Sequence record: NC_049849.1
Length of the DNA: 64,000 bases
Reading direction: 5' to 3' (one strand)
In this document: positions 4,401 to 20,665 of the stretch, one piece after another
Layout of the letters: every line of letters starts with the position of its first letter
Position numbering within the stretch: the first letter of the stretch is position 1
Made by a program: the position numbers and the translations under genes
The notes under the pieces: generated by a model
Told to the model about the DNA's origin: nothing
The model's input: only the letters and a program-made list of their open reading frames with translations
Databases searched by the model: none

Positions 4401-6063
4401 CACCGTCGATCAACGGAAGAGCCGGAGCTTCCCAGTCTTCTTTAAAGCCTTGGTTCTTTGCAGCGCCACGCAGCTCAGCGTCTTGGCCTTCGATTTCGTA
4501 GTACTGATGCGCATAGAAGTACATCATGAACAACCATGCCACGTGCTGCGTGACATAGTGAACCGAGTAGCGCTCGTACACGTTATCCATGCGCTCGAGC
4601 ACAGCCGCGCCTGCTTTCTGGAACCAACGACCGAGAGGACGGAAGGGGGCGAAGTCCGAGTTGTAGGCCAAGTCGAACCAGGTCACATCCTTGTTCTCGG
4701 TGAAGCGCAAGAACAGTTCACGAGCACCAGCGAAGTACGCTTCAGGCTGCGTGTTAGACAGATACTGCGATACCAGACCTTCTGCTTGATCGTTCAACCA
4801 GATTTGTTCGCCTTCGCGTGTAATCCAGTTGTCCGAAGACTTGAGGTGCAGCTGAGGTTCGATACCAGCCGCCTGCGCGATACGAGTCAGAATCGTGAGC
4901 AGCTTAACGTCAACCTTACGCGACAGCCAGTTCTTGATATGAGTAGCCGTCGAAATCATATTCCGGCTAACGTCAGTCACCGTCAGAATGCCGGAAGCGT
5001 TGGTGTACGCGAACTTGCAGTTCACCCAGTCCATCAGAACCGGGATGTTGCTCGGCAGGTTGGCGCTGAACGAAGGTGCCTTCTCATCAACGAGACGGAA
5101 CACTCCGGTGTCGTCCTGATTACCAGCTTGACCGAACAAGTCTTCGTAGCGTTGCGTTTGATCCAGAACCAAAGGCAGATAGATCGGACGGCCACGAGCA
5201 TCAGTACTGATACCCTTGTCGTTCGCCTTCACCGTGACGCTGGTCAAATCCTTCGGCAGAGTCTTGGCGATGCTGGAGATAGCAAACGCAGACTTCGGCG
5301 GCTTGGACTTCTTGTACGCACCGTAGTAGTTCACAGCCCACGACTGCAGAACCACGTACAGGTCTTGCGGACGGATCAGGTTCCATGCGGTGTTGGTGAT
5401 GTACTCGCACTCGGCACGACTCAGAATGAACTTCAGGAACACGACGCCACCAGTGCCACGCTCGACATAGCGAACGCCTTGGAAGCATTCTTGCAGACAT
5501 GCCTTCGCCGGTGCAGGCATATGAGTGCCGACCAGATTGATCGCGTTCTCTGCCTTCAGGATGCCGTACTTGATATCAACGACAGGCCAAGCGTTGCTGT
5601 CTTCGCCGTCGTCCTCTGTCTGCTCGTCCTCGTCAATCAGACCAGGCACCGAGTCGAGGTCGTCTTCTTCCGATTCAGGCTCTTCCGAGTCCATCGAGTC
5701 CTTGGCTTTCTTCACCGGAGTGAATTGACCGAGTTGACGTGCGAGGTCTTCGGGAGTGCCGTAATTCAAGATCGGCAGCTGCACTTCAAAGTCGTTGGCA
5801 TTTTTCTTGACCTGCAGCATGCCAGTGACGTTGTTCGTCATCATTGACAGCACGCCTTTCGCTTTGGCACGGTGCGCCTTAGCGAACTTGGGGTCATTCA
5901 TCTGCTCAGGATACAGATGAGTCAGAGCCAGACGAAGAAACAGCTGAGGATTGATCCGCGGTGAGTTCAGGTACAGGCCCATGAACCCGGACTTCAGCTG
6001 AGTACGATCCAGCTTGAAGTCGGGGTCGAGCTTTAGCTTTGACTTTTCTTTTAACTTGTTCAT
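1477..6063 (-). CDS. Large SNF2-family (SF2) helicase/ATPase, 1528 aa
   Basis: Walker A-like VDAGGGKS, Walker B LLDEAHY, motif III ASGT, GINT-like SINTGLNLQ and motif VI QGNARLNR; SH3/KOW-like GQRVHTEFGEGEV near the C-terminus. Confidence 0.85.
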   Translation of the reverse strand: MNKLKEKSKLKLDPDFKLDRTQLKSGFMGLYLNSPRINPQLFLRLALTHLYPEQMNDPKFAKAHRAKAKGVLSMMTNNVTGMLQVKKNANDFEVQLPILNYGTPEDLARQLGQFTPVKKAKDSMDSEEPESEEDDLDSVPGLIDEDEQTEDDGEDSNAWPVVDIKYGILKAENAINLVGTHMPAPAKACLQECFQGVRYVERGTGGVVFLKFILSRAECEYITNTAWNLIRPQDLYVVLQSWAVNYYGAYKKSKPPKSAFAISSIAKTLPKDLTSVTVKANDKGISTDARGRPIYLPLVLDQTQRYEDLFGQAGNQDDTGVFRLVDEKAPSFSANLPSNIPVLMDWVNCKFAYTNASGILTVTDVSRNMISTATHIKNWLSRKVDVKLLTILTRIAQAAGIEPQLHLKSSDNWITREGEQIWLNDQAEGLVSQYLSNTQPEAYFAGARELFLRFTENKDVTWFDLAYNSDFAPFRPLGRWFQKAGAAVLERMDNVYERYSVHYVTQHVAWLFMMYFYAHQYYEIEGQDAELRGAAKNQGFKEDWEAPALPLIDGEVVIRLPHQQKVANLLRDSPNFAILPVDAGGGKSMLAITDILQEFSKGRSAPYLIGCPGHLVAQYVKELVFFTKSRLNVIPITTYVIRKHGFERLTSMLASAPRNTVVIFDYNVLKLQGVSVCYGTTAVAVYPVAEMLKQMAFQYVLLDEAHYLRKDSQRTRSVMNLVADIPKKRLASGTMAYDSTSDLAMQIAIMDPTIFGTRDEFNERFAAEDGVKNGRVVEWRPGAQQEIMALIKSTVVVAGAKRKEWAALLPPKDEELIPVALTPEQQRVYQMIMSEAEEEIRANKELMAKIAELQNTDENELEDDPDAGNTVEALIRPYLQRADKFVMAPARDPLGNLELKGADRKSPKILKIEERIREHIAIGAKGKILIFASYNETADEIYESIAPDLQARGLLYKAADKVEAQASFETDDNLLWMVGVEDSINTGLNLQFCSRLIRVSFPWTPGALEQGNARLNRPNLKIDEERDTIYYDTILADKTIDIAKASRLISKLISVTKFENADSPAYEEIPDLPVIKMSLDNILGLNSWNDNLMEYAEAYRTYQEVIEADYAAYREDFEAKYGHNFKIPIKEAAPPGDAALMKYTPYVPGLELYGQGQLGLVRLDLYLRSDTLGDDLANETDVESEGKVDMTSKDAQKDVAAFLKGQRVHTEFGEGEVTSVNFAIGTVLVMYDDGSQARLKFSTVFVINRELTSGEDIRRQILKAQGQMPVSDPVLVPSNSFQMTAKGKKLAEKKKAEEEAQREAEKTALQESLNAHLVLLITNGFLGLSFDSSMEGSEATTRALEAVGFRTIEPYFYAHMETPLRLKKQITKWNEAGFVPDPLMTNEMQALLGIYNLMKEGKMGRSSLTFKLANRNQLRNFYRMEHKPSTDTKVIKPYPILENGEVYLALPIRGQVGTLKAIKVRAPGVTWYKSDPTMCYYALTKEKLLAMMKKIQQAGVVITNLEELQREVKRLKVNQVRDAGALEI

Positions 6064-6065
6064 TG

Positions 6066-6752
6066 TTATATCAGATGTGTGACTGAGTTAAGCGGACGAT
6101 ACGCTCGGAGCACCGAGAGGTAGAGATTGTTCATGACGAACTTCTCTAGCTCCGCGTTACTCGGTGTGAACTTACCGGGGATCACCGGAAACACGTCAAC
6201 GTTGATGACGTATCCGTAATGCCAACGCTGCGCGAGATTGGCGCCTTCGTTCGCAACGAAGAACTCTAGGTTGCGCTGCAGGTCACGCTTCCAGTATGCC
6301 GGATAGCGAGGATGCGAGCCTTGGCGAATGCCCATCGCGTAGATGAATGTTGGGTCTTGCTTTACTGCATGACACTTCACATCAACAGTCAAGGTAAAGC
6401 CGGTCGGCGTCATCGCAACTCTACGCTCCACCTTGTAGCTCTTCAGTTCGCGATGAACCGAATGCTTCTCCAAGAACTTGACGATCGCTCTACGCGCAGT
6501 AATGAACGCAGTAAGGATCAAATCGTTCTTGGAGTCTTCAACGGTGAAGGGACGCTGCCCTGCCTTCTCACATAGCTTGATGAACTCGGCAATAGCCTGA
6601 GACCAAGCGGCCCCAGGCTGTTTAGCTTTCACCATACCAACAGCGACTGGCCAGTGCCGTTCACAGTTGGGATTGAACATCATAGGATAGGAGTCTTCGT
6701 CGGGTACCGACTGCTGCTCCATTTGCGAAACACCAAGACTGGATAGGTTCAT
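6066..6752 (-). CDS. Hypothetical protein, 228 aa
   Basis: Tiles in the operon 2 nt from the SNF2 start codon. Confidence 0.65.
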   Translation of the reverse strand: MNLSSLGVSQMEQQSVPDEDSYPMMFNPNCERHWPVAVGMVKAKQPGAAWSQAIAEFIKLCEKAGQRPFTVEDSKNDLILTAFITARRAIVKFLEKHSVHRELKSYKVERRVAMTPTGFTLTVDVKCHAVKQDPTFIYAMGIRQGSHPRYPAYWKRDLQRNLEFFVANEGANLAQRWHYGYVINVDVFPVIPGKFTPSNAELEKFVMNNLYLSVLRAYRPLNSVTHLI

Positions 6753-6760
6753 GTCATACC

Positions 6761-7222
6761 TCAGTCCAAAAAGACGTTAGGCTCGCCATCGTTGTACAGC
6801 ACGTCGCCAAGATCGTCTTCAGTCTCGCCGCCGTCATCATACAAAACGTTTTGCATTTCGTAGTTCTTGCTGGGAGACGTTTCGCCGTCGTTGATGGTGT
6901 TCTTAACTGCCGGCGTCGTTTCAGGATCGTAGTCACCGTCATTGATGCGTTGATCCAGCGTCAATGCGTGAAGCCGCGCAGAGCTATTAACTCTGAACGG
7001 CTCGGTCTTGTAATTCTGCGGCTGGTACGTCGTGCCTTGATAGAGCGACGGCGGACTGGCTTGCACGTCGTAACCCAAGCGCTCACTCAACATGCGGTAG
7101 AAGTCAGACTCAAGTTCTTCCTTGTCTACGCCGAGAGCATGGGCGAAAGCATGTACCTGCTCATCGCTGGGTTCCGGGTTGTGCTCGAGAAAGTTCTCGA
7201 TGATTTGGTCATAGCAGGCCAT
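6761..7222 (-). CDS. Acidic hypothetical protein, 153 aa, with an internal leader-like motif (RVNSSARLHA)
   Basis: AGGAG RBS upstream; D/E-rich sequence. Confidence 0.65.
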   Translation of the reverse strand: MACYDQIIENFLEHNPEPSDEQVHAFAHALGVDKEELESDFYRMLSERLGYDVQASPPSLYQGTTYQPQNYKTEPFRVNSSARLHALTLDQRINDGDYDPETTPAVKNTINDGETSPSKNYEMQNVLYDDGGETEDDLGDVLYNDGEPNVFLD

Positions 7223-7245
7223 GTAAAATCTCCTACGTTTATAAG

Positions 7246-7254
7246 TATAAAATT
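7246..7254 (-). promoter_or_regulatory. Candidate late-promoter motif AATTTTATA
   Basis: Instance of the recurring AATTTnATA motif, 24 nt upstream of the ATG at 7222. Confidence 0.35.
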
Positions 7255-7595
7255 TACGCTTTCGATCTGGCCCTGAACAAATGTGTATGGCGTTTGTCGT
7301 GACAAGACTTGCAGAGACCGACCAGATTGGTCAGAGTGTTGGTGCCGCCTTTCGATAGCGGAATGATGTGATGCGGCTCACTCATCTTGTTTGAGCAGCC
7401 CTGCACTTCGCAGTAACCGCCGCATCGTTTCTTCACCTGAGCATGCAAGTCCCACCAGGAGTTGTTCTTGGTGTAGCCGTTGACCGTTGCATAGGAAGAG
7501 TGTTGAATTCTAGCAGTACCGTTGGCACGACGCGTAGACTTCGCAGCCTTGAGCGTCGTGCGTCGGCCTGCAAGCTTTGACCAGGGGTTCGTCAT
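7254..7595 (-). CDS. HNH endonuclease, 113 aa
   Basis: CEVQGC...HHIIPLSKGGTNTLTNLVGLCKSCHDKRH is a zinc-binding HNH signature. Confidence 0.85.
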   Translation of the reverse strand: MTNPWSKLAGRRTTLKAAKSTRRANGTARIQHSSYATVNGYTKNNSWWDLHAQVKKRCGGYCEVQGCSNKMSEPHHIIPLSKGGTNTLTNLVGLCKSCHDKRHTHLFRARSKA

Positions 7596-8971
7596 TTGGT
7601 AGCAGGTTTGAGTTGTTCAATACCGCGCTGCTTGAACAGGATTTGCACGGAGTGATTGGGCTTGAACTTGTACTTCGGCAGCCAGCAGAGCAGCCCGAGC
7701 GTTGCCGTGAACATATTGCCTTGCGACGTGATGACCTCAGCGGCTGCACGTTGCTTCCACACCTTCAGGGAGAGAATCACGACCTCGCGGATCGTCCCAT
7801 CCTTCGAGTTGTACATGCCGCAGATGGTGCCGCGCCCCTCGTCCTTCGGGCTGAGCTTGTGGCTCTTCACGTAATCAGCGACCTTGCGCTGCTCAGGCGT
7901 CAAGTAGTCATCGTTCGAGTTCTTGTCGTACCGACTTGGGTCGAGACCGCACTTCACCATCCATGATTTCCAGACCGGACCGTGTCCAGCTTCCGGTTCA
8001 CTGTAGACCATAGAGATTTCAGACGTGGCTTGGTGGCACATTTCATGCACCAAGATTTCGAGAAAGATTTCCGGCTTGGCGTTGAACAGTCGAGGACTCA
8101 GTGCGAGATTACGACCAATGCGCTGCCAGTAGCCACGCAGTTTGAAGTGCGAGCCTTGATCCTTTAGCAGCGTGAAGTTCGGTTCATCCAGCTCGCCCTT
8201 GAACTTCGACTTGTTGAGCAGGTTCCACAAATACTTGATGGTCAGCAGCTTCGCTTGATTCGGACTGTTGGATCGAATGGAGTCCAGCTTATCCAACGCC
8301 GACTGCTGCAGCCCGTACTTGTTGAGCGACGGTGCGGTGTCATCAATCAGGTCTTTGTCTACGACCGGAATGTCTTGGTCTTCGGGATCGGCAACAGGAT
8401 TGCCCGAAGGCCCTAGCTTAACAGTCTTGGCCTCAGCGTAACCAGAAGCCGACTGATACATCGTGACCTTGCCATTCTCGACCTTGAGCTTTAGGCCCAC
8501 GTCTTCCGAGTAGTACTGACCGCCTTTCGGAACGAAGCCCCACTCTTTGATGAACTGAGTGGGATTGGTCAAGCGAAACTCGATAGCGCCGAGAGGGTAG
8601 GTGGTGTTTGAGAAAGTGGCCGTAGCGTAACCAGCGACCTCTTTCAGAATGTTGGTCCAGTCAGGTACGGTCTCGCCCATCAAGATCACGCGATCATCCA
8701 ATACCTGAATAGGATAGTGGTTGCCGTTGTGAACCCATATGGCTGGATTGCGAGACCACGGGCTGAAGTCTAGCTTCTTGAGTATGCGCGTGACTTCGTG
8801 AGGAAGCCACTGCGTGTATCCAAGCACTGCCAGGGTCTTCACCTGAACTGGGTCCATGACGGGCAGGCCGCCTAGCTTCAGACGCCGTTGCAGCGATGCC
8901 GCCGACTGCTGTAAGTTCTGATTGCTAGAAAAGGCCCGTGCAAAAATGGGACCGCAGAATGTACATTGCAT
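7592..8971 (-). CDS. SprT-like zinc metalloprotease domain protein (start could be the ATG at 8857)
   Basis: ILVHEMCHQA (HExxH) followed by GHGPVWKSWM; upstream WNLLNKSKFKGEL matches the SprT N-terminal pattern. Confidence 0.78.
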   Translation of the reverse strand: MQCTFCGPIFARAFSSNQNLQQSAASLQRRLKLGGLPVMDPVQVKTLAVLGYTQWLPHEVTRILKKLDFSPWSRNPAIWVHNGNHYPIQVLDDRVILMGETVPDWTNILKEVAGYATATFSNTTYPLGAIEFRLTNPTQFIKEWGFVPKGGQYYSEDVGLKLKVENGKVTMYQSASGYAEAKTVKLGPSGNPVADPEDQDIPVVDKDLIDDTAPSLNKYGLQQSALDKLDSIRSNSPNQAKLLTIKYLWNLLNKSKFKGELDEPNFTLLKDQGSHFKLRGYWQRIGRNLALSPRLFNAKPEIFLEILVHEMCHQATSEISMVYSEPEAGHGPVWKSWMVKCGLDPSRYDKNSNDDYLTPEQRKVADYVKSHKLSPKDEGRGTICGMYNSKDGTIREVVILSLKVWKQRAAAEVITSQGNMFTATLGLLCWLPKYKFKPNHSVQILFKQRGIEQLKPATK

Positions 8972-8974
8972 TAC

Positions 8975-10645
8975 TTACCCTTTGTTCTGTTGCGCGGTGT
9001 GCTCCGCCTTCGTGAGCTCCGCGAGGTCCCATTTCTTTTCGAGCTTGGTAACGTACCAGCTTGGGATAGTCTCTTTAATACCAGACTCCGGTACGTTGAC
9101 ATAGGACTTGTTGTGCGGTATGTAAACCAGCCAGGCACCGCCAGTGCCGTGACCAACAATCAAACCAATGCCCTCAGTGGTCATGTAGAATTTGCCGATG
9201 AGTGTCGGCGATTTCTTCTCTGCTTGCGCACCCGGTTCTTTCTCTAGCTCTTGGCGTCTGGACAGTGCTTTAAGGAAGTAGGAATGGAACTCGTGCTTCT
9301 TGCTGTAGGGCAGCGCATGTTCGACTTCTTTGCGATTGACTTTGTCCCCAAGCACTAGATATGAGACAACCTCTGGATGCTTCCAATCAGGATGCCAAGC
9401 CTTCATGTTGTCGCCGCCTGCCAGGTCTGTGACAATCAGCGGACCGTAGGTGGAGTTGAATGTCCTGGCGACTAGATCGAAACCATACGCTGGCTTCGGC
9501 CCGATGCTCGGCAGCTTACCGCCCTTTTTGAAGACGTTATCCCACGGCTTATTAGGTATGATTTCGCTTTCCGGTTTCTTCTGTGCATTGCTATGCGCCA
9601 TCTGCATGAAGGTTTCGTACTTGGTCATGTCGGACGCCGGCACCGCAGCCTTGAAGGCACCTAGATAGACTTGCATTTGCAGTGACTTGTAGCCAGTCTT
9701 CTTTGGAACATTCCACCCAGGCTGCCATACACGTACGAGGGAAGGCTCATCAATGCCGATGACCAGCAGTGGACCGAACTGCGAATTGAAAGCCTTGCCC
9801 AGCAACTCGGGTCCGAACTTGGGCTTATATACCGTATCCTTGAGCTTGCTGCCAGGACCCCAGTTGAAGTTCTGTGTGGTCGGCACTCCGGGCAGGCCTT
9901 TGCTTGGCTTGCCAGGCTCGAAAATCGTTTTCGCGTTCTTGTCCAGTATGGGATTGCGGATCACCGTGGTCTTAATCGACTCGTTGCCGGGAATGAATAC
10001 GATGAACTCGCGCTCATCCGTATAGTCATCCAGCTGCTTGTGAGCACGACCCCACATGAAAGCAGCAGAGCGATAGAATGTTGCGAACTTGGGGTCACCG
10101 CCTTCCTTGTGCGCGGCATCCAGCGCCACGAACATTTTGAATAGCCGATCAGTGATGATCTTAATCGACGCGTGGTCTGCAAGAACCAATCGACGGTCAG
10201 GCTTCCATGAAACGGTCAGCTTGTCATACGCTTGAAACTTTTTGAGAGCCACATCAGAGAACGATAGGATCGGACTGAACGTGTTTTTCTTATTCAGCTC
10301 CAGCGTACCGCCAACCGGAATCTGCTCGTCTTCTTTGTTGACCTTGGTGCTACGATACAGCAGCTTGGGGACCTTCGGCTTAGCCAGCACCTGCAAGTGA
10401 GCCATGGCGACCGCAATGGCATCAACCTTGTCATAAGTGCGGGCTTCAAGGGCAGCGCTGTGCAGACGTTCGCTTTTGTTCTGCATCATGAAGTCGCCGC
10501 TGAACCAACCAGTGACCAGCGTCGGCAGCTTGTGCGCCAGGAACTCCCGCTCATCAGCGCCAAGCTTCGAGTAGAAGGCCCACGTCTTCTTTACATCAGG
10601 CGTAGGCTTCAGCGCTAACAGTCTATAAGCTGCTTGGATTTCCAT
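8975..10645 (-). CDS. Putative ADP-ribosyltransferase (R-S-E class) with leader and C-terminal repeated beta modules, 556 aa
   Basis: LLYRST / PILSFSD / DEREFIVF follows the R, SxS, ExE order; N-terminus MEIQAAYRLLA. Confidence 0.6.
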   Translation of the reverse strand: MEIQAAYRLLALKPTPDVKKTWAFYSKLGADEREFLAHKLPTLVTGWFSGDFMMQNKSERLHSAALEARTYDKVDAIAVAMAHLQVLAKPKVPKLLYRSTKVNKEDEQIPVGGTLELNKKNTFSPILSFSDVALKKFQAYDKLTVSWKPDRRLVLADHASIKIITDRLFKMFVALDAAHKEGGDPKFATFYRSAAFMWGRAHKQLDDYTDEREFIVFIPGNESIKTTVIRNPILDKNAKTIFEPGKPSKGLPGVPTTQNFNWGPGSKLKDTVYKPKFGPELLGKAFNSQFGPLLVIGIDEPSLVRVWQPGWNVPKKTGYKSLQMQVYLGAFKAAVPASDMTKYETFMQMAHSNAQKKPESEIIPNKPWDNVFKKGGKLPSIGPKPAYGFDLVARTFNSTYGPLIVTDLAGGDNMKAWHPDWKHPEVVSYLVLGDKVNRKEVEHALPYSKKHEFHSYFLKALSRRQELEKEPGAQAEKKSPTLIGKFYMTTEGIGLIVGHGTGGAWLVYIPHNKSYVNVPESGIKETIPSWYVTKLEKKWDLAELTKAEHTAQQNKG

Positions 10646-10654
10646 GTCTAGTCC

Positions 10655-10996
10655 TTACTTCTTCGATTTGTAGCGCTGATCCTCTGGAACCTTCGACCAC
10701 ATCTTCTGCTGCTTCACAGCCTCAGCCTTCATTTCTCTGTAAATAGACTTCAAGTTGTTCGGCACAGCCTTATCAACTTTTTCTTCGTACAGCAAAATCC
10801 CCAGGTCAGCGAACTTGACGTAGCCCCAACCTGTTTGCCAAGTCGGGTTGAAGACGCCGGCGATCTTACGGTCAGCGTCGACCATGACGACCAACACCGG
10901 ACCTTCCTTACTGTCACGGTAGGTATTGGGTTCGGGCGTTGCGGCGGGTGCGCGCCTCGGAGCCGCCGCAAGGCGAGCGCGTGCTTGAATTTCCAT
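10655..10996 (-). CDS. Leader-bearing small protein; stand-alone copy of the beta module repeated in the 556-aa protein
   Basis: MEIQARARLAA; YRDSKEGPVLVV...VFNPTW resembles FNSQFGPLLVI...VWQPGW. Confidence 0.65.
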   Translation of the reverse strand: MEIQARARLAAAPRRAPAATPEPNTYRDSKEGPVLVVMVDADRKIAGVFNPTWQTGWGYVKFADLGILLYEEKVDKAVPNNLKSIYREMKAEAVKQQKMWSKVPEDQRYKSKK

Positions 10997-11005
10997 GTTT
11001 ATTCC

Positions 11006-12142
11006 TTAGTGAAATTTGTACTTCTTACCGCCTGGGCCCCCGGTCTTGGTGTTGCTCTTAGAGCCCCACTTGTAACTCGGCTTAGACTTAGCCGGACCGC
11101 CGCCTTTGTAACTCGTCTTCTTTTTGAAGCTAGGCGGCTGCATCCATTCGTCAGACTCGTCGTTGCCGCCGTCGAAGTCGAAGGGCTTATAGCCTTTCGG
11201 CAAGCCTTTCTTGAACACCTTGTACACCGGCATCTTCTCGAACTTGAGTCTATTCTCTTTGCTCAAGTCCTCCATGAAGTAGTCAGCCGATTCGTCGGTA
11301 CCCATAACGTTTTTAACGTCAGTAACAACGGTCTTCATTTGATTGGTCAAGACTTCGACCTTGGGGCCGACTTTGGTGATCACGACATTGCCGTACTTCG
11401 GCCAGTAGCGAACAGCGCCAATGTTCAAAGCGAACGGATTGCGAATTACCTTGACCGTCAAACTTTCGTTGCCCGGGATGAACACGATGAACTCGCGTTC
11501 CTTCTCGAAGTGTTCGATTTCGCTCAGCGCATCTTCCCATTCATCAGAAGCCTGACTGTAGAAGTTGATGTAAGGGTCGGAGTCATCTGACTCGCGGTCG
11601 TCGTGAGCGTGCATCAAGTCGTCAAACATATTCTTGAACATCGAACATATTTGAACCATCCAATGGAAGTCACCCAACACCAAACGCGGGTCTACCTTCC
11701 ACTCAATAGTCAAGTTATCCGACTCTTCAAACATCGTAGGCTTCTCGTCAGCAAACGACAGGATCGGACTGCGAGTCGTCTTGGCATTGAGTTCCAACGT
11801 GCCGCCGACAGGAGTGAGCATCTGCTCTTTGTTCACATGCGTGGCACGGTACAGAACCTTCGGGACTTTGAACGGAAAGGCTTGCTTGATGTGTCCAAGC
11901 GCGACCGCGATGGCATCAACCTTGTGATACTTCTTGGCAGTCAAATGCGAAGTCAAGCGTTGCGTCTTATTCTGCTTTGTGAACGAACCGCGGAACCATT
12001 GCGCAAGCAACGGCGGCAGTTCGAGAGCAAGGAAGCTGCGCTCCTTCGGGCCAAGCTTCGAGTAGAACGCCCAAGCCTTTTTGCTGCTTGAGGGCGGCTT
12101 CAATGCCTCAAGCCGAGTGGCTGCTTGAATTTCGTAGGTCAT
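11006..12142 (-). CDS. Putative ADP-ribosyltransferase paralogue 2, 378 aa
   Basis: MTYEIQAATRLEA; VLYRAT / PILSFAD / EKEREFIVFIPGNES; clearly aligns with 8975..10645. Confidence 0.6.
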   Translation of the reverse strand: MTYEIQAATRLEALKPPSSSKKAWAFYSKLGPKERSFLALELPPLLAQWFRGSFTKQNKTQRLTSHLTAKKYHKVDAIAVALGHIKQAFPFKVPKVLYRATHVNKEQMLTPVGGTLELNAKTTRSPILSFADEKPTMFEESDNLTIEWKVDPRLVLGDFHWMVQICSMFKNMFDDLMHAHDDRESDDSDPYINFYSQASDEWEDALSEIEHFEKEREFIVFIPGNESLTVKVIRNPFALNIGAVRYWPKYGNVVITKVGPKVEVLTNQMKTVVTDVKNVMGTDESADYFMEDLSKENRLKFEKMPVYKVFKKGLPKGYKPFDFDGGNDESDEWMQPPSFKKKTSYKGGGPAKSKPSYKWGSKSNTKTGGPGGKKYKFH

Positions 12143-12143
12143 A

Positions 12144-12908
12144 TTATTTGCTCTTGTACGCTTTGGGTTTTGGCTTCTTCTTTTCCAGGTTACGGTTCAG
12201 CAGCACGGTGCACGCCAGTCCCTCGTTACCCGGAACCCACACGATGTATTCGCTTTCAGCCCTGTATTCTTTCATGGTCTGGTACAGCCGAGTCCACTCT
12301 TTCAAGCCCGCTGCATACTCCTTCTTCAGCTGCGGCGTTAACTTATCAGCCGGAGTATTCACTAGCAATGATCTGAGCATCTTGGCAGTAGACTCGGCGA
12401 ACATAAGAAGGTAACGCGGAGTCGACAGGACCAAACGCTGGTCCGTTTTCCATTCGAGGTCCAAAGTACTGTGGCCTCGAAAGTTAGGCTGAACCTTGCT
12501 AGAGAACGAGAGGATCGGAGTCAACGTCGATTTCAAATCCAGCGTTACCGTATCACCTACCGGAGTCTTCTGCTGCTCTTTGTTGATGCCAGTAACGCGA
12601 TACAGCTTGGCCGGAGCTTTAACGGGAAAGACCTGCTTGATGTGAGCAAGCGCCACAGCAATCGCGTCGACCTTGTGATACGAACGAGCTTCAATCGAAG
12701 ACTCCAGGCGTTCGCTCTTTCGATTCTTGCCTTGGTGCATGAACGACCCACCGAACCAGCCTTCAAGCAACTTCGGCAATTCAACGCGAAAGAATTTGCG
12801 CTCTGCCGTCCCAAGCTTTTTGTAGAACAGGGCGAATACTGTCTTGGGCGAAATGTCGTTAGCGGTTAATGCTTCAAGCCGCGTGGCTGATAGGACTTCG
12901 TATGTCAT
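12144..12908 (-). CDS. Putative ADP-ribosyltransferase paralogue 3, 254 aa
   Basis: MTYEVLSATRLEA; KLYRVT / PILSFSS / RAESEYIVWVPGNE; KVDAIAVA is shared by all three paralogues. Confidence 0.6.
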   Translation of the reverse strand: MTYEVLSATRLEALTANDISPKTVFALFYKKLGTAERKFFRVELPKLLEGWFGGSFMHQGKNRKSERLESSIEARSYHKVDAIAVALAHIKQVFPVKAPAKLYRVTGINKEQQKTPVGDTVTLDLKSTLTPILSFSSKVQPNFRGHSTLDLEWKTDQRLVLSTPRYLLMFAESTAKMLRSLLVNTPADKLTPQLKKEYAAGLKEWTRLYQTMKEYRAESEYIVWVPGNEGLACTVLLNRNLEKKKPKPKAYKSK

Positions 12909-13453
12909 GAGTACTGCCCTTCGTTCATTTGGATATCGCCTTGCGGAGTCGGCTGAACTCCATCAATGGTCATGACTCCCGTGTCCACTGTGACGTTTCC
13001 CAGGGTGTCAGGAGATTGACCGTTGACCGACAGGACCGGATTGGTCGACGGTGGCACAACAGGGCGGTCAAGAGAGTCGCCGAGTGCTTGGTGAACAAAG
13101 AGCTTCACCGGCACAGTCGAGACATTTTTGACAATGAAATTGGTAGTCAGCTCATCCAACACCAGCAGGTTCTTGACGTAAATCGTGACCTGCGTGTCAT
13201 CCAGTTTCCGCGTGTACTCAACAGAGATAGGACCATCGCAGCGAACGATCAGCATGTTGGAACTGGCGCCAGTCCATACTTGATTGGGTGCGAGTTCGAA
13301 GATCGAATTTTGAATCGAGGTCTCGCTCAGATAGGCTTGCGAGTAGTCACCCACACGCTGGCGAATCTGATTGTAGCCTTGCTGCACACCTACGCTTACC
13401 ACCAGAGAGTTCCTGGGCTTTTTAGCCGGGGTGATTGAAACTTCGTAATCCAT
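12905..13453 (-). CDS. Probable virion/fibre-associated protein, 182 aa (start MDYEVS)
   Basis: VLSVNGQSPDTLGNVTV repeats typical of fibre proteins; C-terminal NEGQYS resembles the DxGTY/F ends of other fibre genes here. Confidence 0.6.
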   Translation of the reverse strand: MDYEVSITPAKKPRNSLVVSVGVQQGYNQIRQRVGDYSQAYLSETSIQNSIFELAPNQVWTGASSNMLIVRCDGPISVEYTRKLDDTQVTIYVKNLLVLDELTTNFIVKNVSTVPVKLFVHQALGDSLDRPVVPPSTNPVLSVNGQSPDTLGNVTVDTGVMTIDGVQPTPQGDIQMNEGQYS

Positions 13454-13454
13454 T

Positions 13455-14582
13455 TTATTTCTCCAGTGCCACGATATAGTCGGTGAGCTTTTCTTTGTAG
13501 CGCACGAGCTTTGCCAGTTCGGTCGACAGCGACTCGGCGCCAGGACCTTCACCAAATTCTTTCAGCTTCGACTGCACTGCCGTAATCTGATTGTCGATAG
13601 AGGACAGCGCAATGTAGGCTCGGTCGAGTTCGGGGTCACCCGTTTCTTCCGGCTCTTCCTGATCGTTGTCGTCAAACTCTAGCTGCAGGTTCGACGGGTC
13701 TTGACCAAGGTTGATGATATCCTCGGCTGCATCTTTCATGTAGCCCATGAACTTCTGCATCTTGATTTCGTCACGCTGCCGTTGCGCTTCACGGTCTTGC
13801 TTCTCTTGTTCAGCCCGAGCTTTCCGATTCTCCGCCGCCTTATCTTTGGCGTCTTGTATCATCTGCGCGTCGTCTTCTTCAGTAGAGAGCGACTCAGGCT
13901 CATCGCCGTCCTCGTCAGGGATAATCTCGTCGTTGCCTTCGTCGGGTCCGTTCTCGTTATCGTCAGCAGTGCCTGGTCTGAACTTCGACTCGGGATGCTC
14001 GGCCAGCCACTGCTTTTGTTGCGACGAGTCCCACGATTTAAAATCCTGTTCAGAGATAGCGCGAATGGCTGTAGCTTGCAGTCGAGTCGATGCGAAGATT
14101 TCCATCATCAGCTCTTGCTGCGACGGCAGAGTGATATCTTCCAAGCGCTCTAGCGTTTTCGGATCAATGGTTTCAGGAATGCCCTCGAACGATTGCGGGT
14201 GGCCGTTCTTGTCCACCATATCGCCGCCGGCATCATCACCAGCTTCGATTCCAAAGTCATCAGCTTGTTCAGCGTTCGGCACATCAGTACCAGTGAAGGC
14301 CGACGACGCTTTGATGAACGCAGCAGCTTCGGTAATGGAAGCTTTCAGCTTTGCGTCGTCGATGCACTTACTGCAAATTTTGGAGCCACCACAGCGGGAG
14401 CGCTCGCCGTTAGCATTTGCAAATACATGACCGTGCCCAGCGCCCATAGCGGCACGTCCATCTGAAGTCTGTGGTACTCCGTCGAACATGGCGGGGTATT
14501 TTGTTTTGAGCATTGCATCAAATTCCTCTTGGGTTTCACCACGGCGCTCTAGTAGGCGCTGCATTCGTTGGTCTATATCCAT
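13455..14582 (-). CDS. Acidic hypothetical protein, 375 aa (start MDIDQR), with GHGH..RCGG..C..C motif and internal leader MEIFASTRLQA
   Basis: The ATG at 14582 abuts the stop of the upstream gene at 14584. Confidence 0.65.
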   Translation of the reverse strand: MDIDQRMQRLLERRGETQEEFDAMLKTKYPAMFDGVPQTSDGRAAMGAGHGHVFANANGERSRCGGSKICSKCIDDAKLKASITEAAAFIKASSAFTGTDVPNAEQADDFGIEAGDDAGGDMVDKNGHPQSFEGIPETIDPKTLERLEDITLPSQQELMMEIFASTRLQATAIRAISEQDFKSWDSSQQKQWLAEHPESKFRPGTADDNENGPDEGNDEIIPDEDGDEPESLSTEEDDAQMIQDAKDKAAENRKARAEQEKQDREAQRQRDEIKMQKFMGYMKDAAEDIINLGQDPSNLQLEFDDNDQEEPEETGDPELDRAYIALSSIDNQITAVQSKLKEFGEGPGAESLSTELAKLVRYKEKLTDYIVALEK

Positions 14583-14583
14583 A

Positions 14584-14844
14584 CTAGCCCGGATTTCCCA
14601 CAGTGTAGAAGTAAACCTTGTCAGGCGTGCTAGGCATCGTAACGCACCAGCACGTCTCGGAGTCTTGCTCAACGATTGCGCCTTCAGCTTCGAGTGCCGT
14701 GATAGCGCGCTCTACATCATCCGGGTCGTTGTCGATAGCCAAGCCCTGCGAGCTGACTTCGGCGGCGAGGCCTGCGGCGTTCAGTATGTCGTGTACCTCG
14801 TTGACTGCTGAGGCTTTCAGTCTTGCACGGGCTTGGATTCTCAT
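14584..14844 (-). CDS. Leader-bearing small protein, 86 aa
   Basis: MRIQARARLKA; tiles exactly with neighbours. Confidence 0.7.
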   Translation of the reverse strand: MRIQARARLKASAVNEVHDILNAAGLAAEVSSQGLAIDNDPDDVERAITALEAEGAIVEQDSETCWCVTMPSTPDKVYFYTVGNPG

Positions 14845-15123
14845 TTACGTCACCTTGTATGCGATAGAGAAGTCGTGACCGTCTTTGCCTTTGCTGATGT
14901 ACTGGACTTCGATGCCATTGCGCTTCAGCATTTCGAAGTAGCGGAAATGAATCGTGCCATCAACAAAGAAGAAGCCCTCGTTGATTTTTGCATCGGGGCT
15001 GTCTTTCATTTTCTTGTGAAAGGCCGGAGGGATCGAAACGTTCGGCATCAAGTGCAGGTCTTCGATCACTTCGGAGATAGGACGCGCTGCAGCAGTCAGC
15101 CGTGCCTTTGCTTGGATGTGCAT
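14845..15123 (-). CDS. Leader-bearing small protein, 92 aa
   Basis: MHIQAKARLTA; TAATG coupling with the upstream gene. Confidence 0.7.
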   Translation of the reverse strand: MHIQAKARLTAAARPISEVIEDLHLMPNVSIPPAFHKKMKDSPDAKINEGFFFVDGTIHFRYFEMLKRNGIEVQYISKGKDGHDFSIAYKVT

Positions 15124-15749
15124 TACTTCTTCCTGTTAAACGGATTGATCGACATGACGACCGGCACGCGCCACTCAGGGCCCCACGGCTTGGTGTCCGA
15201 GTACCACTTCAGCTGGTCACGGTCCCAGTAGTTCCACGCCTTCCAGCCCAGCTTATACGTGCCGTACTTGCCTTGGTAGTTGATGTTCCACAAACCATTG
15301 GTAGCGGTAGCGATGAACAGCTGATGCTTACCATCAAACGGCTGCCAGGTTTGGATCGTCCACTTCTTCTGATCCATCACTTCGCCAAGCGGGTAGTAGG
15401 AGAAGCCGTAACCAGAGTTGCGATTCAGCCAACGCCACTGGTAGTATTTGCGACGCCAGAAGCTCGGCAGATTGTCTTTGCTGTATGTGCCCTTCGGTAC
15501 GAAGTAGCCGCCAATCCAACCAGTGTCTAGCGACGCATCAAACGTCTCTACCCACTTGAGCCAGTTCGGCAGGCGCTGTTCCAATCCTTGCCATTCAGGC
15601 TTGGCTTGCGAGTACATCCACTCCTCGGGCTTGACCGGACGTGCGACAAACACGACCCACCAGTTGAGAAACAGAACGCAGAAAAGGTTGAAGACCAAAT
15701 CAACCAGACCCAACGCCAACCACTTCAAAGTTTGCACTACATACTTCAT
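15123..15749 (-). CDS. Trp-rich protein with N-terminal hydrophobic segment, 208 aa
   Basis: LALGLVDLVFNLFCVLFLNWWVVFV is a likely transmembrane helix; WRWLNRNSGYGF; AGGAG RBS. Confidence 0.7.
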   Translation of the reverse strand: MKYVVQTLKWLALGLVDLVFNLFCVLFLNWWVVFVARPVKPEEWMYSQAKPEWQGLEQRLPNWLKWVETFDASLDTGWIGGYFVPKGTYSKDNLPSFWRRKYYQWRWLNRNSGYGFSYYPLGEVMDQKKWTIQTWQPFDGKHQLFIATATNGLWNINYQGKYGTYKLGWKAWNYWDRDQLKWYSDTKPWGPEWRVPVVMSINPFNRKK

Positions 15750-15759
15750 TGACTAACTC

Positions 15760-16005
15760 CTATTTGAAAAGACGCTCTGCCTTACGCAGCAGATGCGACG
15801 CCATCTTGATGTTGCCTTGCTTCAACCAACGCTCGACCTCTTCAGCGATATCCAACATATCCCGCTCTTCGGATTTCACCAAGTCGCGAATCAGTCTCGG
15901 CATACGACCTAAGGCATCAGCATCACCCTTCAGTGCTTGCTGGAACAGAATGGAAGGCCCGTTGAAGGCCTCTAGCCTTGACGCTGCTCTTATTTGAAAC
16001 CCCAT
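15760..16005 (-). CDS. Leader-bearing small protein, 81 aa
   Basis: MGFQIRAASRLEA. Confidence 0.7.
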   Translation of the reverse strand: MGFQIRAASRLEAFNGPSILFQQALKGDADALGRMPRLIRDLVKSEERDMLDIAEEVERWLKQGNIKMASHLLRKAERLFK

Positions 16006-16008
16006 AGC

Positions 16009-16206
16009 TCAAACTCCAAAACGAGTAATGCGCTCCGCCAGTGTATCAGCATAGCGATCCATGAAGAAGGCCTGAGTCTCTAGCAACTCTTGATCGGCCA
16101 AAGGTAAATCCTTGAACAGCTGAGTTTCAAAGAATGCCTTGAGCTTGGTCAAGCGTTCCATGAGTTCCGAGTGTTCACTTACTACGCGTTGCTGATGTGG
16201 TGCCAT
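16009..16206 (-). CDS. Small coiled-coil phage protein (crAss001_48-like), 65 aa
   Basis: HQQRVVSEHSELMERLTKLKAFF...QELLETQAFFMDRYADTLAERI pattern, recognised from memory. Confidence 0.6.
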   Translation of the reverse strand: MAPHQQRVVSEHSELMERLTKLKAFFETQLFKDLPLADQELLETQAFFMDRYADTLAERITRFGV

Positions 16207-16218
16207 TATTTTTCCTAG

Positions 16219-17775
16219 TTATAGTGGGCCTGCGCAAGCACCCCAGTTGTAGCTGGCGGGTGCATAGCGTCCCCACACAGAAGCTGGGCTGATAGTGATA
16301 CCAACAGCACCAGTTGCCCCTCTTGCCACGCCGGCTCCACCCGACCCGCCGCCAGAACCATCACCGCCAGTGTTGCCACGGATAATTAGGTTTTGCTTGA
16401 ACGGCTTCAGCTCGTTGTCCAACCGCGATTGAATCTTGGACGCAGCGCTGTCGAGGTACTGAGTACGATCCACGTTCAGGCTAATGGCTTGGCCTTGGAA
16501 GTCGAATGCCTTCTCACCTTCGGCGAGATACTGCGCTTCGATTGCAAACAGCTCGGCCAACATCAACCAGTACTCGCGAATGCCACCCAGTGCATTGGTC
16601 ATGGTGAAGTTCGTAGAAACGCCCATCCAACCATTGAACGCATCAGCCGCACGTCGCAACCAAGTCATGATTGTGGTCGGTGGGAACAACAGGTCAGGCG
16701 CTCCGTAGAGAGTCGTACGCGCCTTGTTGATCTTTGCCTTCACATCGTCAATCGCATTGGCTAGCGATGCGTTGATAACGAATAGATCGGTGCGTTCAGT
16801 GTAGACGCGTGCCGAATACTTCGATTGCCAGAACTTCCACACCACCGAGTACGGATAGACCGCAGCCGGCAGGTTGTCGGTGACCAGCACGCCTGCATAA
16901 TACCAACCAGACGCGACCTTGATAGGAGCATCGGTAGCAGGCTGCGACGTATCCGAAATCATCGTCAGCGGAACCAGCTGCTGATTCTGCCTAAACAGTT
17001 GGATGCCTACTCGGTCATACATCTGGTCAGTGACGAGCTCCAGCGTTGCAGGATCGCCCTGCATTTCGACTTGCGGTTGCACACCAATGGGCACGGTAAC
17101 GAGACCGACCACGGTGATGGCTTCGCCTTGAAATTCACGCACGGTCGAGCCATCAGGCTGCCGACGTTGAATGGTCCAACGCAGTTGATACTTCTGGTTC
17201 TCAATCGTAGGCGGAATGTCCGACGGTACAACGATGACGGCACGCGCCAGTACGTTGTTAGAGAAGCCGTTGACCTCTACGCGATATTCAAAAGCATTGC
17301 CTGCAGCGTAGACCGTACCATCCTCGGCCAACAGCTCATACAGAACGAAGCCGCCAGAGGGGTCGATATCAACTGGGTACGAGAACACGCACGTACCGAT
17401 GACCGAGTCGCCGGCCTGTACCGTATCGACCAAGTCCTTAAATGCGTCAGGGCTCTGCGTCGAATACGGAACCAGTTCGCCGGATTGCGTATTGCAGGTC
17501 ACGGCTAGCAACGCTCCGAACTTGCGGAGGTTGGTGGTGACCACAACATCAATGCCGTACGAGATACCGGGGCTGCCGCCAGTCATGCGGACTTCGATGG
17601 TGACGCCATCAATGCCGAGATACGTAGCATTAAGTGGGGTGGTGGTGACTGGAGTCGGGGCACCCAGTTCAACCAAAGTGATCGTTTCGCCTGGTTGAAG
17701 CAGTGACCCCAACTGCGCTTGCACTACAGTGTCGCTGTTAGTGTCTTTGTAGTAGACGAAAGTTGTTGATGCCAT
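16219..17775 (-). CDS. Virion structural protein, possibly head-tail adaptor/neck, 518 aa
   Basis: Long ORF with beta-rich N-terminal part and helical C-terminal part (EKAFDFQGQAISLNVDRTQYL); function inferred from context. Confidence 0.5.
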   Translation of the reverse strand: MASTTFVYYKDTNSDTVVQAQLGSLLQPGETITLVELGAPTPVTTTPLNATYLGIDGVTIEVRMTGGSPGISYGIDVVVTTNLRKFGALLAVTCNTQSGELVPYSTQSPDAFKDLVDTVQAGDSVIGTCVFSYPVDIDPSGGFVLYELLAEDGTVYAAGNAFEYRVEVNGFSNNVLARAVIVVPSDIPPTIENQKYQLRWTIQRRQPDGSTVREFQGEAITVVGLVTVPIGVQPQVEMQGDPATLELVTDQMYDRVGIQLFRQNQQLVPLTMISDTSQPATDAPIKVASGWYYAGVLVTDNLPAAVYPYSVVWKFWQSKYSARVYTERTDLFVINASLANAIDDVKAKINKARTTLYGAPDLLFPPTTIMTWLRRAADAFNGWMGVSTNFTMTNALGGIREYWLMLAELFAIEAQYLAEGEKAFDFQGQAISLNVDRTQYLDSAASKIQSRLDNELKPFKQNLIIRGNTGGDGSGGGSGGAGVARGATGAVGITISPASVWGRYAPASYNWGACAGPL

Positions 17776-18501
17776 TTATCCTACCGCCACAATGTCTAGG
17801 AATCCCCTGCGGTCTACGTTCATAGAGAAGCGTTCGCCGCTCGGTAGTTGAGATATCATGACCAAGTCGGTGCCGTGCTTCACGACTTGCGAGGGCTTCT
17901 TGGTCAAGAACTGTACGCCGAGTTTGCCAAGCTCAACCAGGAAGGTCAAGGCCGACACATCGGTAGAGAAGTGAATCATGTCCAACCCATCAGCTTGCTC
18001 GACCGAGATTTTACCCTTGGCCAAACGGTTAGCGGCTTTCATGATCGCAGTTTTCGGATCGGCTGCGGCGGTGACCCGCGCTTCCATGTCAGCACCGTTA
18101 GCGAGTTCATCAGCTACAGCGCCATCGGCCGAACCTTCAATGGTTTCATCTTCGACTTCGGAGACGACACCGGGAAACATGGATTCAATGACGAAGGCCA
18201 TCGACTTCCCACCATCGGTCTCCAGCTCATCGGAAGTCACGACCGAAGGGTCTTCTGAACTCGTGACTGCTTGGTACATTGCATCGACTGCGGATGCTTG
18301 GGTGATCGCGTAGGCTTTCACTTTATCTCGTCCTTTCAATGATTCAGCTTCGTCTTCACCGTCACGTTCAAATTCTGCATCGGTGAGTTCTTGCTGAAGT
18401 TCATTTGCGTACTCGGTGTCTCCAGTACGCTTGGCATCACGAATCTGATTCTTGAGGTCACGGATTCGCTTGTCCAATTCTTTCGAGCTATGAATACGCA
18501 C
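17776..18501 (-). CDS. Acidic hypothetical protein, 241 aa
   Basis: Tiles in the operon, with GGAG upstream. Confidence 0.65.
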   Translation of the reverse strand: MRIHSSKELDKRIRDLKNQIRDAKRTGDTEYANELQQELTDAEFERDGEDEAESLKGRDKVKAYAITQASAVDAMYQAVTSSEDPSVVTSDELETDGGKSMAFVIESMFPGVVSEVEDETIEGSADGAVADELANGADMEARVTAAADPKTAIMKAANRLAKGKISVEQADGLDMIHFSTDVSALTFLVELGKLGVQFLTKKPSQVVKHGTDLVMISQLPSGERFSMNVDRRGFLDIVAVG

Positions 18502-18817
18502 TTTTCGATTTCTCCTTTATGCCGGTATCGACGATTTCGATCTGCGCCATACCTGGAGCAATATCGAACACCTTTACCGTACCATGAGGGAACTGTGCTT
18601 CGTACCGGCGCTTGTCTTTCAGGTGTACGAACTTCGCCTTAGACATTTCCTTAACCAGTACGTCTGCACTCTTGTTAGCGGAGTACAAAAGCGTATGCCC
18701 CAGGCCGTAAGTGACCTGGGGTGTTATGTTGGACTTCAGCCCTAGCTCTTGCAAGAACTTTCGTCCGGCCGCTTTGTCGCTCACTGCATGAAGCCGGAGT
18801 GCGGCGAGGATTTGCAT
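18488..18817 (-). CDS. Leader-bearing small protein, 109 aa (start MQILAALRLHA)
   Basis: GGAG-TTAACA-ATG at 18817; leader motif. Confidence 0.7.
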   Translation of the reverse strand: MQILAALRLHAVSDKAAGRKFLQELGLKSNITPQVTYGLGHTLLYSANKSADVLVKEMSKAKFVHLKDKRRYEAQFPHGTVKVFDIAPGMAQIEIVDTGIKEKSKSAYS

Positions 18818-18819
18818 TG

Positions 18820-19056
18820 TTAACTCCAACGTTTAGCGTGGTTCTTCCAGCGCTCCAGCTCTTCGGGGTCGGGATTGTTGCGCCCGGCCGCACTGTTGCG
18901 CCAACCGTGGTACCACTCCTCGGCGTCGAACGAATTAGCCGGATAGGGGCAGTCATTACGCGCTGCACCGTTGTCACCATCGGCTTGACCTTTACGAAAC
19001 GCCGGTGTGATATCGCCCATCGAAGCTTGCAGTCTCACGGCAGCTTTGATTTGCAT
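18820..19056 (-). CDS. Leader-bearing ribosome modulation factor (Rmf/CrpP)-like protein, 78 aa
   Basis: MQIKAAVRLQA then AFRKGQADGDNGAARNDCPYPANSFDAEEWYHGWR, matching the RMF pattern G..AG..G.....CPY.......W..GW. Confidence 0.6.
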   Translation of the reverse strand: MQIKAAVRLQASMGDITPAFRKGQADGDNGAARNDCPYPANSFDAEEWYHGWRNSAAGRNNPDPEELERWKNHAKRWS

Positions 19057-19580
19057 TACTGCTCCTTTGCAACGACGCGGGCTTTAGGAGCCAGCACTTC
19101 GTAGATGTAACTCGTATTGTTGTAGCGATGCACCGACAGATTCAACTCTTTAGCCTGAGCGGCATCAATCGGCTTACCCGTGTAGTACCAGAGTATGACC
19201 TTTTCGATCTGCGGCAGCGTCACGTTCTTTGGTTTGCGTTTGATCTTGCCAGCCTTGTAGCAGCCGTCACGCTCTAGCACATCCATCAAAACGTTCAGCC
19301 AACTGGAGTGGCCTGCTGCTGATTTGCCAACAGGTTCCATGCGGTACACGTTGTCGCCGTACGGTGCAGAGTCTTTCGGATTCCGTGACAAGAAAATGCA
19401 CTTCATGCGAGAGACTCCGATGCCAAGCTGCGCACGAGCCCACTCGAAGACTTGCTCTACCACACCCATGCGTTGATTCGACGGCTTGGCAGTAATGACC
19501 TTACCGATCGGCAAGTCCGCAGTCGTTCCATGGTAGAGCGGCTGCGATGCTTGCAATCTCACGGCAGCTTGAATTTCCAT
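19056..19580 (-). CDS. Leader-bearing H-type ADP-ribosyltransferase-fold protein (Arr-like), 174 aa
   Basis: MEIQAAVRLQA; LYHGT, IFLSRNP...YGDNVYRMEP, C-terminal IYEVL. Confidence 0.6.
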   Translation of the reverse strand: MEIQAAVRLQASQPLYHGTTADLPIGKVITAKPSNQRMGVVEQVFEWARAQLGIGVSRMKCIFLSRNPKDSAPYGDNVYRMEPVGKSAAGHSSWLNVLMDVLERDGCYKAGKIKRKPKNVTLPQIEKVILWYYTGKPIDAAQAKELNLSVHRYNNTSYIYEVLAPKARVVAKEQ

Positions 19581-19584
19581 TTTG

Positions 19585-19827: not shown

Positions 19828-19835
19828 TTCAGTCC

Positions 19836-20219: not shown

Positions 20220-20227
20220 TTCAGTCC

Positions 20228-20656: not shown

Positions 20657-20665
20657 TTCATTCCT

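Follow-up and report, generated by a model that had tools for sequence, protein, structure and literature searches.

Three paralogous proteins of Achromobacter phage Motura carry a conserved R-S-ExE signature like that of ADP-ribosyltransferases and a common N-terminal leader

We have examined three paralogous genes, coding for proteins of 556, 378 and 254 amino acids (aa), that lie at 8975-12908 in a window of 64,000 nucleotides from sequence record NC_049849.1. The window corresponds to bases 124001-188000 of MN094788.1 (100% identical over region 8000-14000), the genome of Achromobacter phage Motura, a jumbo myovirus of 221 kb to which Pseudomonas phages PaBG and Lu11 are distantly related (PMC7412058); positions are those of the window unless the record is named. 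The reading we prefer, to which we assign a probability of about 0.45, is that the three proteins belong to a very divergent family of R-S-ExE mono-ADP-ribosyltransferases (ARTs), nearest in layout to ModA and ModB of phage T4, which a short N-terminal leader would direct into the phage head for injection into the host. For the narrower proposal that the three proteins are NAD+-using R-S-ExE transferases, which draws on residue conservation and a predicted structure, the chances appear close to even, while additional delivery of these transferases in the virion, argued by analogy, has a lower probability than this.

The genes had been noticed in a preliminary description made from the sequence alone, and the coordinates given there proved exact. 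All three are intact open reading frames (ORFs), annotated in GenBank as hypothetical proteins. Pairwise identities determined by BLASTP are 52% (E 2e-65), 44% (E 1e-60) and 40% (E 1e-50) over 236-241 aa, a paralogy far beyond chance. The genes neighbour one another on the same strand, as expected of the tandem array that had been proposed, but are not strictly tandem because a leader-bearing ORF of 113 aa sits between the 556- and 378-aa genes.

8975-10645, minus strand: 556-aa paralog (QDH83611); leader, conserved domain of ~215 aa and C-terminal extension of 320 aa (ORF list, GenBank coding sequence and BLASTP).
10655-10996, minus strand: 113-aa ORF (QDH83612) between the 556- and 378-aa genes; leader and a single copy of a module of ~60-80 aa.
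11006-12142, minus strand: 378-aa paralog (QDH83613); leader, conserved domain and C-terminal extension of 140 aa with a Lys/Gly-rich basic tail at its end.
12144-12908, minus strand: 254-aa paralog (QDH83614); degenerate leader, conserved domain and short basic tail; the protein used for modelling.

The motifs on which the ART proposal had been founded, KVDAIAVA, LYR, PILSF[SA] and an ExE-PGNE segment, are each present in each protein and in the order described. KVDAIAVA is located at aa 73-80, 74-81 and 79-86 of the 556-, 378- and 254-aa proteins, respectively, and the remaining motifs provide the candidate active-site residues.

10352-10360 (556 aa, aa 96-98, R98), 11846-11854 (378 aa, aa 97-99, R99) and 12597-12605 (254 aa, aa 102-104, R104), minus strand: LYR, candidate NAD-binding Arg on strand 1; the Arg is invariant, lies in predicted strand 101-106 and is aligned to ModB R73.
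10256-10273 (556 aa, aa 125-130, S128), 11750-11767 (378 aa, aa 126-131) and 12501-12518 (254 aa, aa 131-136, S134), minus strand: PILSF[S/A/S], candidate counterpart of the S-T-S motif; predicted strand 132-136, aligned to S-F-T of ModB.
9980-10015 (556 aa, aa 211-222, E211/E213), 11465-11500 (378 aa, aa 215-226) and 12222-12257 (254 aa, aa 218-229, E218/E220), minus strand: E[R/S]E[F/Y]IV[F/W][I/V]PGNE, candidate catalytic Glu pair; opens predicted strand 220-224 and gives the best local hhalign match to the ExE region of Alt and ModA.

These residues are conserved far beyond Motura. A HMMER profile search of 1.8 billion cluster representatives detected 45 proteins at E<=1e-3, none of them named in the source; one match, of 917 aa (P0043), is a low-complexity repeat protein and was excluded. 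An alignment of 40 members was assembled, in which identity is ~20% and many members share 18-30% with the Motura protein; numbering follows the 254-aa protein. The only invariant columns are W51 and R104, with P45, S134, E218 and E220 each conserved in >90% of sequences, such that the Arg, the Ser and the two Glu residues occupy four of the six most conserved positions in the family. The Arg is present in 40 of 40 sequences and preceded by Tyr in 33, while the Ser is present in 39 of 40 and followed by Trp or Phe in all 40 and then by Ser or Thr in 39. The first Glu column contains Glu in 37 sequences and Gln in three, the second contains Glu in 39 of 39, followed by a hydrophobic run, and QxE is also found, as read by eye, in a homolog outside the alignment (P0031). 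In R-S-E ADP-ribosyltransferases the first acidic position may switch between Glu and Gln while the second Glu stays invariant. Family-wide conservation of R, S and ExE, including the Glu/Gln switch, is the strongest evidence that these sequences may encode ARTs.

A second line of evidence is provided by the predicted structure of the 254-aa protein. AlphaFold, given the 40-sequence alignment, returned a confident model with a predicted local distance difference test score (pLDDT) of 89.2 and a predicted template modelling score (pTM) of 0.84; a run with four sequences (pLDDT 54) was discarded. Helices 7-16, 21-31, 34-52 and 79-91 are placed N-terminal to a beta core, in which strand 101-106 carries LYR, the short strand 120-123 and strand 132-136 (ILSFS) follow, and strands 149-154 and 160-162 precede a helical hairpin (164-184/192-213). 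Strand 220-224, opening with the second Glu, and a last strand, 231-238, complete the domain. The independent models of the three Motura proteins in BFVD agree with this prediction (query-normalised template modelling score (TM) 0.84-0.94). The motif pattern of the R-S-E clade is found in the model, aromatic-Arg lying on the first core strand, S-x-[S/T] on the second and [E/Q]-x-E opening the predicted fifth, so that motif order and predicted strand placement are those of R-S-E ARTs, with the hairpin replacing the loop before ExE. The signature argument is much stronger than it would be from the three paralogs alone, since it applies to a deep family and to a confident model as well.

Several results weigh against an ART identity. 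The placement of R, S and ExE in the model is read as strand order and not as pocket geometry. A Foldseek search of the PDB (350,542 chains) produced no match at E<=1e-3, the best having E 0.039 with TM <=0.25; no TM exceeded 0.27, and no ART was present among the 50 PDB matches listed. Against BFVD only Motura's own proteins were recovered, the lone ART-named entry (E 0.72, TM 0.28) being noise. Thus, the ART fold, a split beta-sheet core, was not recognised by structure comparison, and no other fold was assigned either. The preliminary description had set an unlike predicted fold beforehand as a point of refutation, and the failure of Foldseek to find an ART in PDB or BFVD goes half way to that outcome. 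Pfam, PHROG and NCBIfam scans of the three proteins and all 40 aligned homologs returned nothing above noise. Furthermore, when profiles were compared by hhalign, using an alignment of seven Mod sequences and one of 11 Alt ART domains (T4 Alt, ModA and ModB being taken from the phage collection), the family did not match significantly either Mod (P 0.13) or Alt (P 0.11), whereas Alt and Mod matched each other at 7.8e-4. In an hmmsearch rank test with 80 decoy ORFs of the same phages, the family-wide Mann-Whitney P was not significant for either the Mod model (0.11) or the Alt model (0.34). The Motura domain ends one strand earlier than ModB, with nothing to correspond to the last ModB strand, and the Ser motifs are not exactly in register in the Alt alignment.

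These negatives differ in weight. Sequence negatives weigh little because T4 ModA and ModB, which are proven ARTs, themselves have no match in the local Pfam library, and the best match of the Mod profile to a solved ART (E 0.073) is not significant. PDB sequence-profile searches with the 4- and 40-sequence profiles of the family yielded no match at E<=10. More weight attaches to the Foldseek negative. ART similarity may nevertheless be masked, because a hairpin of ~50 residues splits the small beta core and the top Foldseek matches contain hairpins; those PDB matches, to the membrane-fusion proteins MexA and AcrA, to pilins and to methyltransferases, are read as hairpin matches and not as homology.

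The same results bear on the possibility that the proteins are enzymes of a different or new fold, in which the Arg, the Ser and the two Glu would form an active site that does not use NAD+, for example that of a hydrolase or another transferase, the signature being convergent or coincidental. Four conserved polar residues argue for catalysis of some kind, and a confident model that matched neither an ART nor any other known fold, together with profile comparisons that did not reach significance, is what such an enzyme would be expected to give. However, local contexts, order, spacing and strand placement jointly match those of ARTs, and no alternative family matched better in any search, so that we regard a different enzyme as unlikely.

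The known enzymes that the family most resembles are ModA and ModB, whose relatives carry LYRG, V-x-S-F-[ST] and E-x-E-x-M-x-P-x-G. Common to both groups are a domain of ~200 aa with an N-terminal helical part, a first strand that carries LYR(G), a Ser motif reading S-F-[S/T] instead of S-T-S, and a long, probably helical insert before an ExE that is followed by a hydrophobic strand and Pro/Gly; spacing is also similar (R73-S99-E173 in ModB, R104-S134-E220 in Motura), and both escape local Pfam and PDB sequence searches. R73 of ModB is catalytic (PMC10468400). In the hhalign comparison with Mod, LYR and LYRG, S-[W/F]-[S/T] and S-F-T, and ExE and ExE fall in register within one collinear alignment that is not significant. 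The best local matches to single T4 proteins, likewise not significant, pair the family with the Arg motifs of Alt and ModB and the ExE motif of ModA, and in the rank test with a Mod hidden Markov model the three Motura proteins take the first three places among 120 sequences. Differences are also evident. The Motura family lacks the Gly after the Arg, the middle residue of its Ser motif is mostly Trp, and its helical hairpin before ExE is longer; modA and modB lie in a T4 early region, whereas the Motura genes bear a leader and are found among virion genes.

Resemblance to Alt takes other forms. Alt, a phage enzyme of the R-S-ExE type, is annotated in T4 as travelling within the head and being injected, its segment of ExE, strand and P-x-G gives the best local profile match, and T4 contains adjacent paralogous copies or fragments (alt.-1 and alt.-2). 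In contrast, Alt has 682 aa with its ART domain at the C-terminal end, while the Motura domain is N-terminal. The preliminary description had assigned the proteins to an expanded Alt-like family. This assignment did not hold, as PF03496 (Alt/VIP2) detected T4 Alt at 5.8e-36 (124 bits), while the 40 members gave no match at E<=0.1. Neither PF26816 (the Mod family) nor any other Pfam entry was present for six family members and four gene-table entries, a result that rests on precomputed matches, in which ModB relatives do show PF26816. 'Alt-like' is therefore wrong as a family label, and the label that the data allow is ART-like by its putative catalytic signature, with a predicted layout closest to that of ModA/ModB. 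The R-S-ExE ART identity proposed originally is thus upheld in part, by the signature across 40 homologs, the strand order and the register with Mod, but no profile or fold match was significant.

If the proteins are ARTs, NAD+ would be held by the invariant Arg of the aromatic-Arg motif (strand 1) and by the Ser of the S-[W/F]-[S/T] motif, which lies on the next long strand, and the [E/Q]-x-E that opens the strand after that would act as catalyst in passing ADP-ribose to a host protein, probably at an arginine. The helical hairpin of ~50 aa would take the place of the short pre-ExE loop of classical ARTs. The variable C-terminal parts (the repeated module of the 556-aa protein, the basic Lys/Gly tails of its two paralogs) may set target choice or association with DNA, and the three proteins may, as had been suggested, have different targets. 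The 11-residue leader, common to the three paralogs and 13 other genes of the virion block, would direct the proteins into the procapsid, from which they would enter the host with the DNA, as the T4 internal proteins and Alt do.

The paralogs are unrelated past their shared N-terminal domain, in agreement with the divergent C-termini described before; comparison of the paralogs shows similarity ending after this domain. The proteins have isoelectric points (pI) of 9.2-9.8 and Lys-rich tails.

8975-9937, minus strand: C-terminal extension of the 556-aa protein; the module of the 113-aa ORF occurs here two to three times; no known domain.
11006-11428, minus strand: C-terminal extension of the 378-aa protein; no known domain; Lys/Gly-rich tail.

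The module shared by the 113-aa ORF and the C-terminal half of the 556-aa protein is ~60-80 aa in length, follows the pattern G-P-[LV]-[LI]-V ... W-x-P-x-W ... V-P and has no known-domain match; two copies are detected by BLASTP (E 8e-4 and 0.03) and a third by eye. An apparent match of the 556-aa C-terminus to CroV588 in the PDB (E 3.7e-7) was rejected as an artefact, one segment of 28 aa pairing with each of 12 repeats in the target and each match being insignificant.

The leader has the consensus M-x-I-Q-A-x-x-R-L-x-A, is 11 aa long and opens all three paralogs, as had been reported, in a degenerate form on the 254-aa protein.

10613-10645, minus strand: leader of the 556-aa protein, aa 1-11.
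12104-12142, minus strand: leader of the 378-aa protein, aa 1-13.
12870-12908, minus strand: leader of the 254-aa protein, aa 1-13, degenerate (VLSATRL).

The core pattern of the leader matches 18 times in the window, 15 of these at true gene starts, compared with ~2 (range 0-8) in shuffled sequence. The whole Motura genome, scanned piecewise, contains 16 leader genes. All of them are in the virion-gene block (112-178 kb of the record), to which the genes for major capsid, tail tube, portal, baseplate and tail fibre also belong, and none is in the remaining ~145 kb. Further leader genes are the following.

10655-10996, minus strand: leader gene (the 113-aa ORF).
14584-15123, minus strand: leader gene.
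Within 18488-21187, minus strand: leader genes.
53347-53691, minus strand: leader gene.
Record 112891-113343 (L022): leader gene.

The leader is conserved as a peptide and not as DNA, because its Arg codons (AGA in six genes, CGN in nine) as well as its Leu and Ala codons vary. It is present in 12 of the 40 family members, the other 28 starting directly with the conserved domain, which indicates a separable, detachable tag, and the same leader opens several genes on the metagenomic contigs of relatives. Of the 15 proteins that are encoded in the window and bear the leader, 12 have a pI >=9.0. T4 IPII and IPIII have in common a capsid-targeting sequence of ~10 aa that is not common to all core proteins (PMC9958956). 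Both cases involve a short N-terminal peptide on otherwise unrelated proteins, the T4 ones lying inside the head and the Motura genes being confined to the virion-gene block; they differ in that there is no sequence similarity between the peptides and the Motura set is far larger. The distribution of the leader thus fits a head-incorporation signal, by analogy with T4, without proving packaging.

With regard to packaging, the evidence is not all favourable. The T4 analogy is loose because the T4 sequence is not common to all core proteins, no prohead protease was recognised in Pfam scans of genes around the major capsid gene, and no virion proteome of Motura was found. No cleavage site for the Motura leader was identified, PHROG scans of the genes past the portal gave tail, baseplate and head-morphogenesis families only, and the PaBG paper mentions proteolytic processing of virion proteins in general terms only.

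Position in the virion-gene block also raises the question of whether the proteins have no catalytic function and are instead components of the virion, such as basic proteins of the head interior or proteins associated with DNA, in which the conserved residues serve folding or assembly. Translational coupling of the genes to their neighbours, a leader shared with many small unassigned proteins, the high pI and Lys-rich tails, and the failure of any enzyme family to match would all suit such a role. However, structural proteins at ~20% identity rarely keep one Arg, one Ser and Glu-x-Glu as their top polar positions, a conservative Glu/Gln switch at one such position is rare among them, and 28 of 40 homologs have no leader; we therefore consider a purely structural role improbable, although together with the unrelated enzyme it is the main rival of the ART reading. 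Quite unlikely, in our estimation, is the proposal that the proteins are true ARTs made in the infected cell, like ModA and ModB, the leader serving chaperone or protease recognition, localisation or regulated turnover; a layout that resembles Alt less than it resembles the non-virion proteins ModA/ModB, the absence of the leader from most family members and the reliance of packaging on analogy point in this direction, but all 16 leader genes belong to the virion-gene block, the replication and early regions having none.

Several other observations were made on leader-bearing proteins. A 78-aa protein (18820-19056, minus strand) resembles ribosome modulation factor (PF04957, E 1.7e-5, 25.2 bits, threshold 27.9), a similarity that hints at a ribosome-hibernation factor among the tagged proteins. 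A 114-aa protein (53347-53691, minus strand) matches DUF3175 above threshold (28.4 bits), and a leader-bearing DUF3175 gene is also present in a relative (L008, 19820-20194). In a basic protein of 174 aa (19056-19580, minus strand), which has no family match, L-Y-H-G-T follows right after the leader. GenBank places the starts of three genes (18488-18829, 19585-19839 and 19836-20240, minus strand) at TTG or GTG 4-7 codons upstream of an ATG that opens a perfect leader, and these starts are therefore probably too far upstream. Leader-like motifs were also observed at other positions: after Met-Met inside an acidic protein of 375 aa (~14075-14099 in 13455-14582, minus strand), where the motif is kept after Met in the homolog of the closest relative (L002), inside a protein of 153 aa (6761-7222, minus strand) and at the end of the L002 NUDIX protein. 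Such motifs could be internal starts, or sites of cleavage or recognition.

A broader proposal can be framed from these data, namely that phages of the Motura clade use an undescribed 11-residue peptide to load a large set of proteins into the head for injection. In Motura at least 16 genes would belong to this set, among them those for three R-S-ExE enzymes, the DUF3175 protein and the protein similar to ribosome modulation factor, and the enzymes would be either an ART clade too divergent for present fold and profile tools or a new convergent fold. Taken as a whole, this proposal is rather improbable.

Relatives of the family among 50,697 deposited phage genomes were confined to Motura, also when three divergent family members served as queries, and a word-indexed search of 5.8 billion proteins yielded one homolog, P0002 (42% identity), with none added when the alignment was the query. 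P0002 is encoded on a metagenomic contig of 40 kb (L002) that is syntenic with Motura, the same upstream genes being followed by the homolog and then by SprT-like, HNH and SNF2-helicase genes. All other members of the family are encoded on contigs from metagenomes and assemblies. Three further, larger contigs carry genes for SNF2 helicase, SprT, topoisomerase I and NUDIX, and the four contigs inspected, these three and that of P0002, look like related jumbo phages; the gene table of a shorter duplicate locus (L007) was also obtained. The family is without an entry in any library searched; the literature could be checked for it only in part. In a maximum-likelihood tree the three Motura proteins and P0002 form one clade (support 100/99) in which the 254-aa protein branches first, which implies that at least one duplication predates the split from the phage of P0002, which is now single-copy.

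Within Motura there is very little space between the genes: the 254-aa start codon and the stop codon of the gene upstream of it overlap in ATGA, and a single base separates the 254-aa stop from the 378-aa start. Scans of 6000-22000 for promoters and terminators found fewer sites than in shuffled sequence. Directly downstream of the 556-aa gene lies a gene for an SprT-like metalloprotease of 459 aa (PF10263, HExxH; 7592-8971, minus strand), and in the closest relative the SprT-like gene (L002, 10969-12348) is likewise directly downstream of the single-copy homolog. In the loci of two relatives a NUDIX gene adjoins the family gene; the distance is two genes in a third and ~8 kb in a fourth. Motura has NUDIX genes elsewhere in its genome.

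L005, 8483-9988: NUDIX gene.
L008, 10762-11232: NUDIX gene.
L002, 7672-8199: NUDIX gene.
L006, 1821-2336: NUDIX gene.

NUDIX enzymes commonly process ADP-ribose derivatives (PMC9503650), and their proximity therefore lends weak support to an NAD-linked role. Within the broader and rather improbable proposal framed above, this proximity suggests further that the enzymes might have RNA capped with NAD as their target or, like T4 ModB, join RNA chains to proteins of the host.

Even if an ART identity proves wrong, conservation of the R/S/E/E site still indicates that jumbo phages have an unknown enzyme activity. If it proves right, the family has been missed by Pfam, PHROGs, NCBIfam and Foldseek, so that phage ADP-ribosylation would be under-counted in surveys that use them, and three diverged copies with different C-terminal parts would constitute a natural system for the study of target choice. 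Should the leader be a packaging signal, it would mark the whole set of proteins that this group of phages delivers to the host and, like the T4 signal, might be a tool for loading foreign proteins into capsids.

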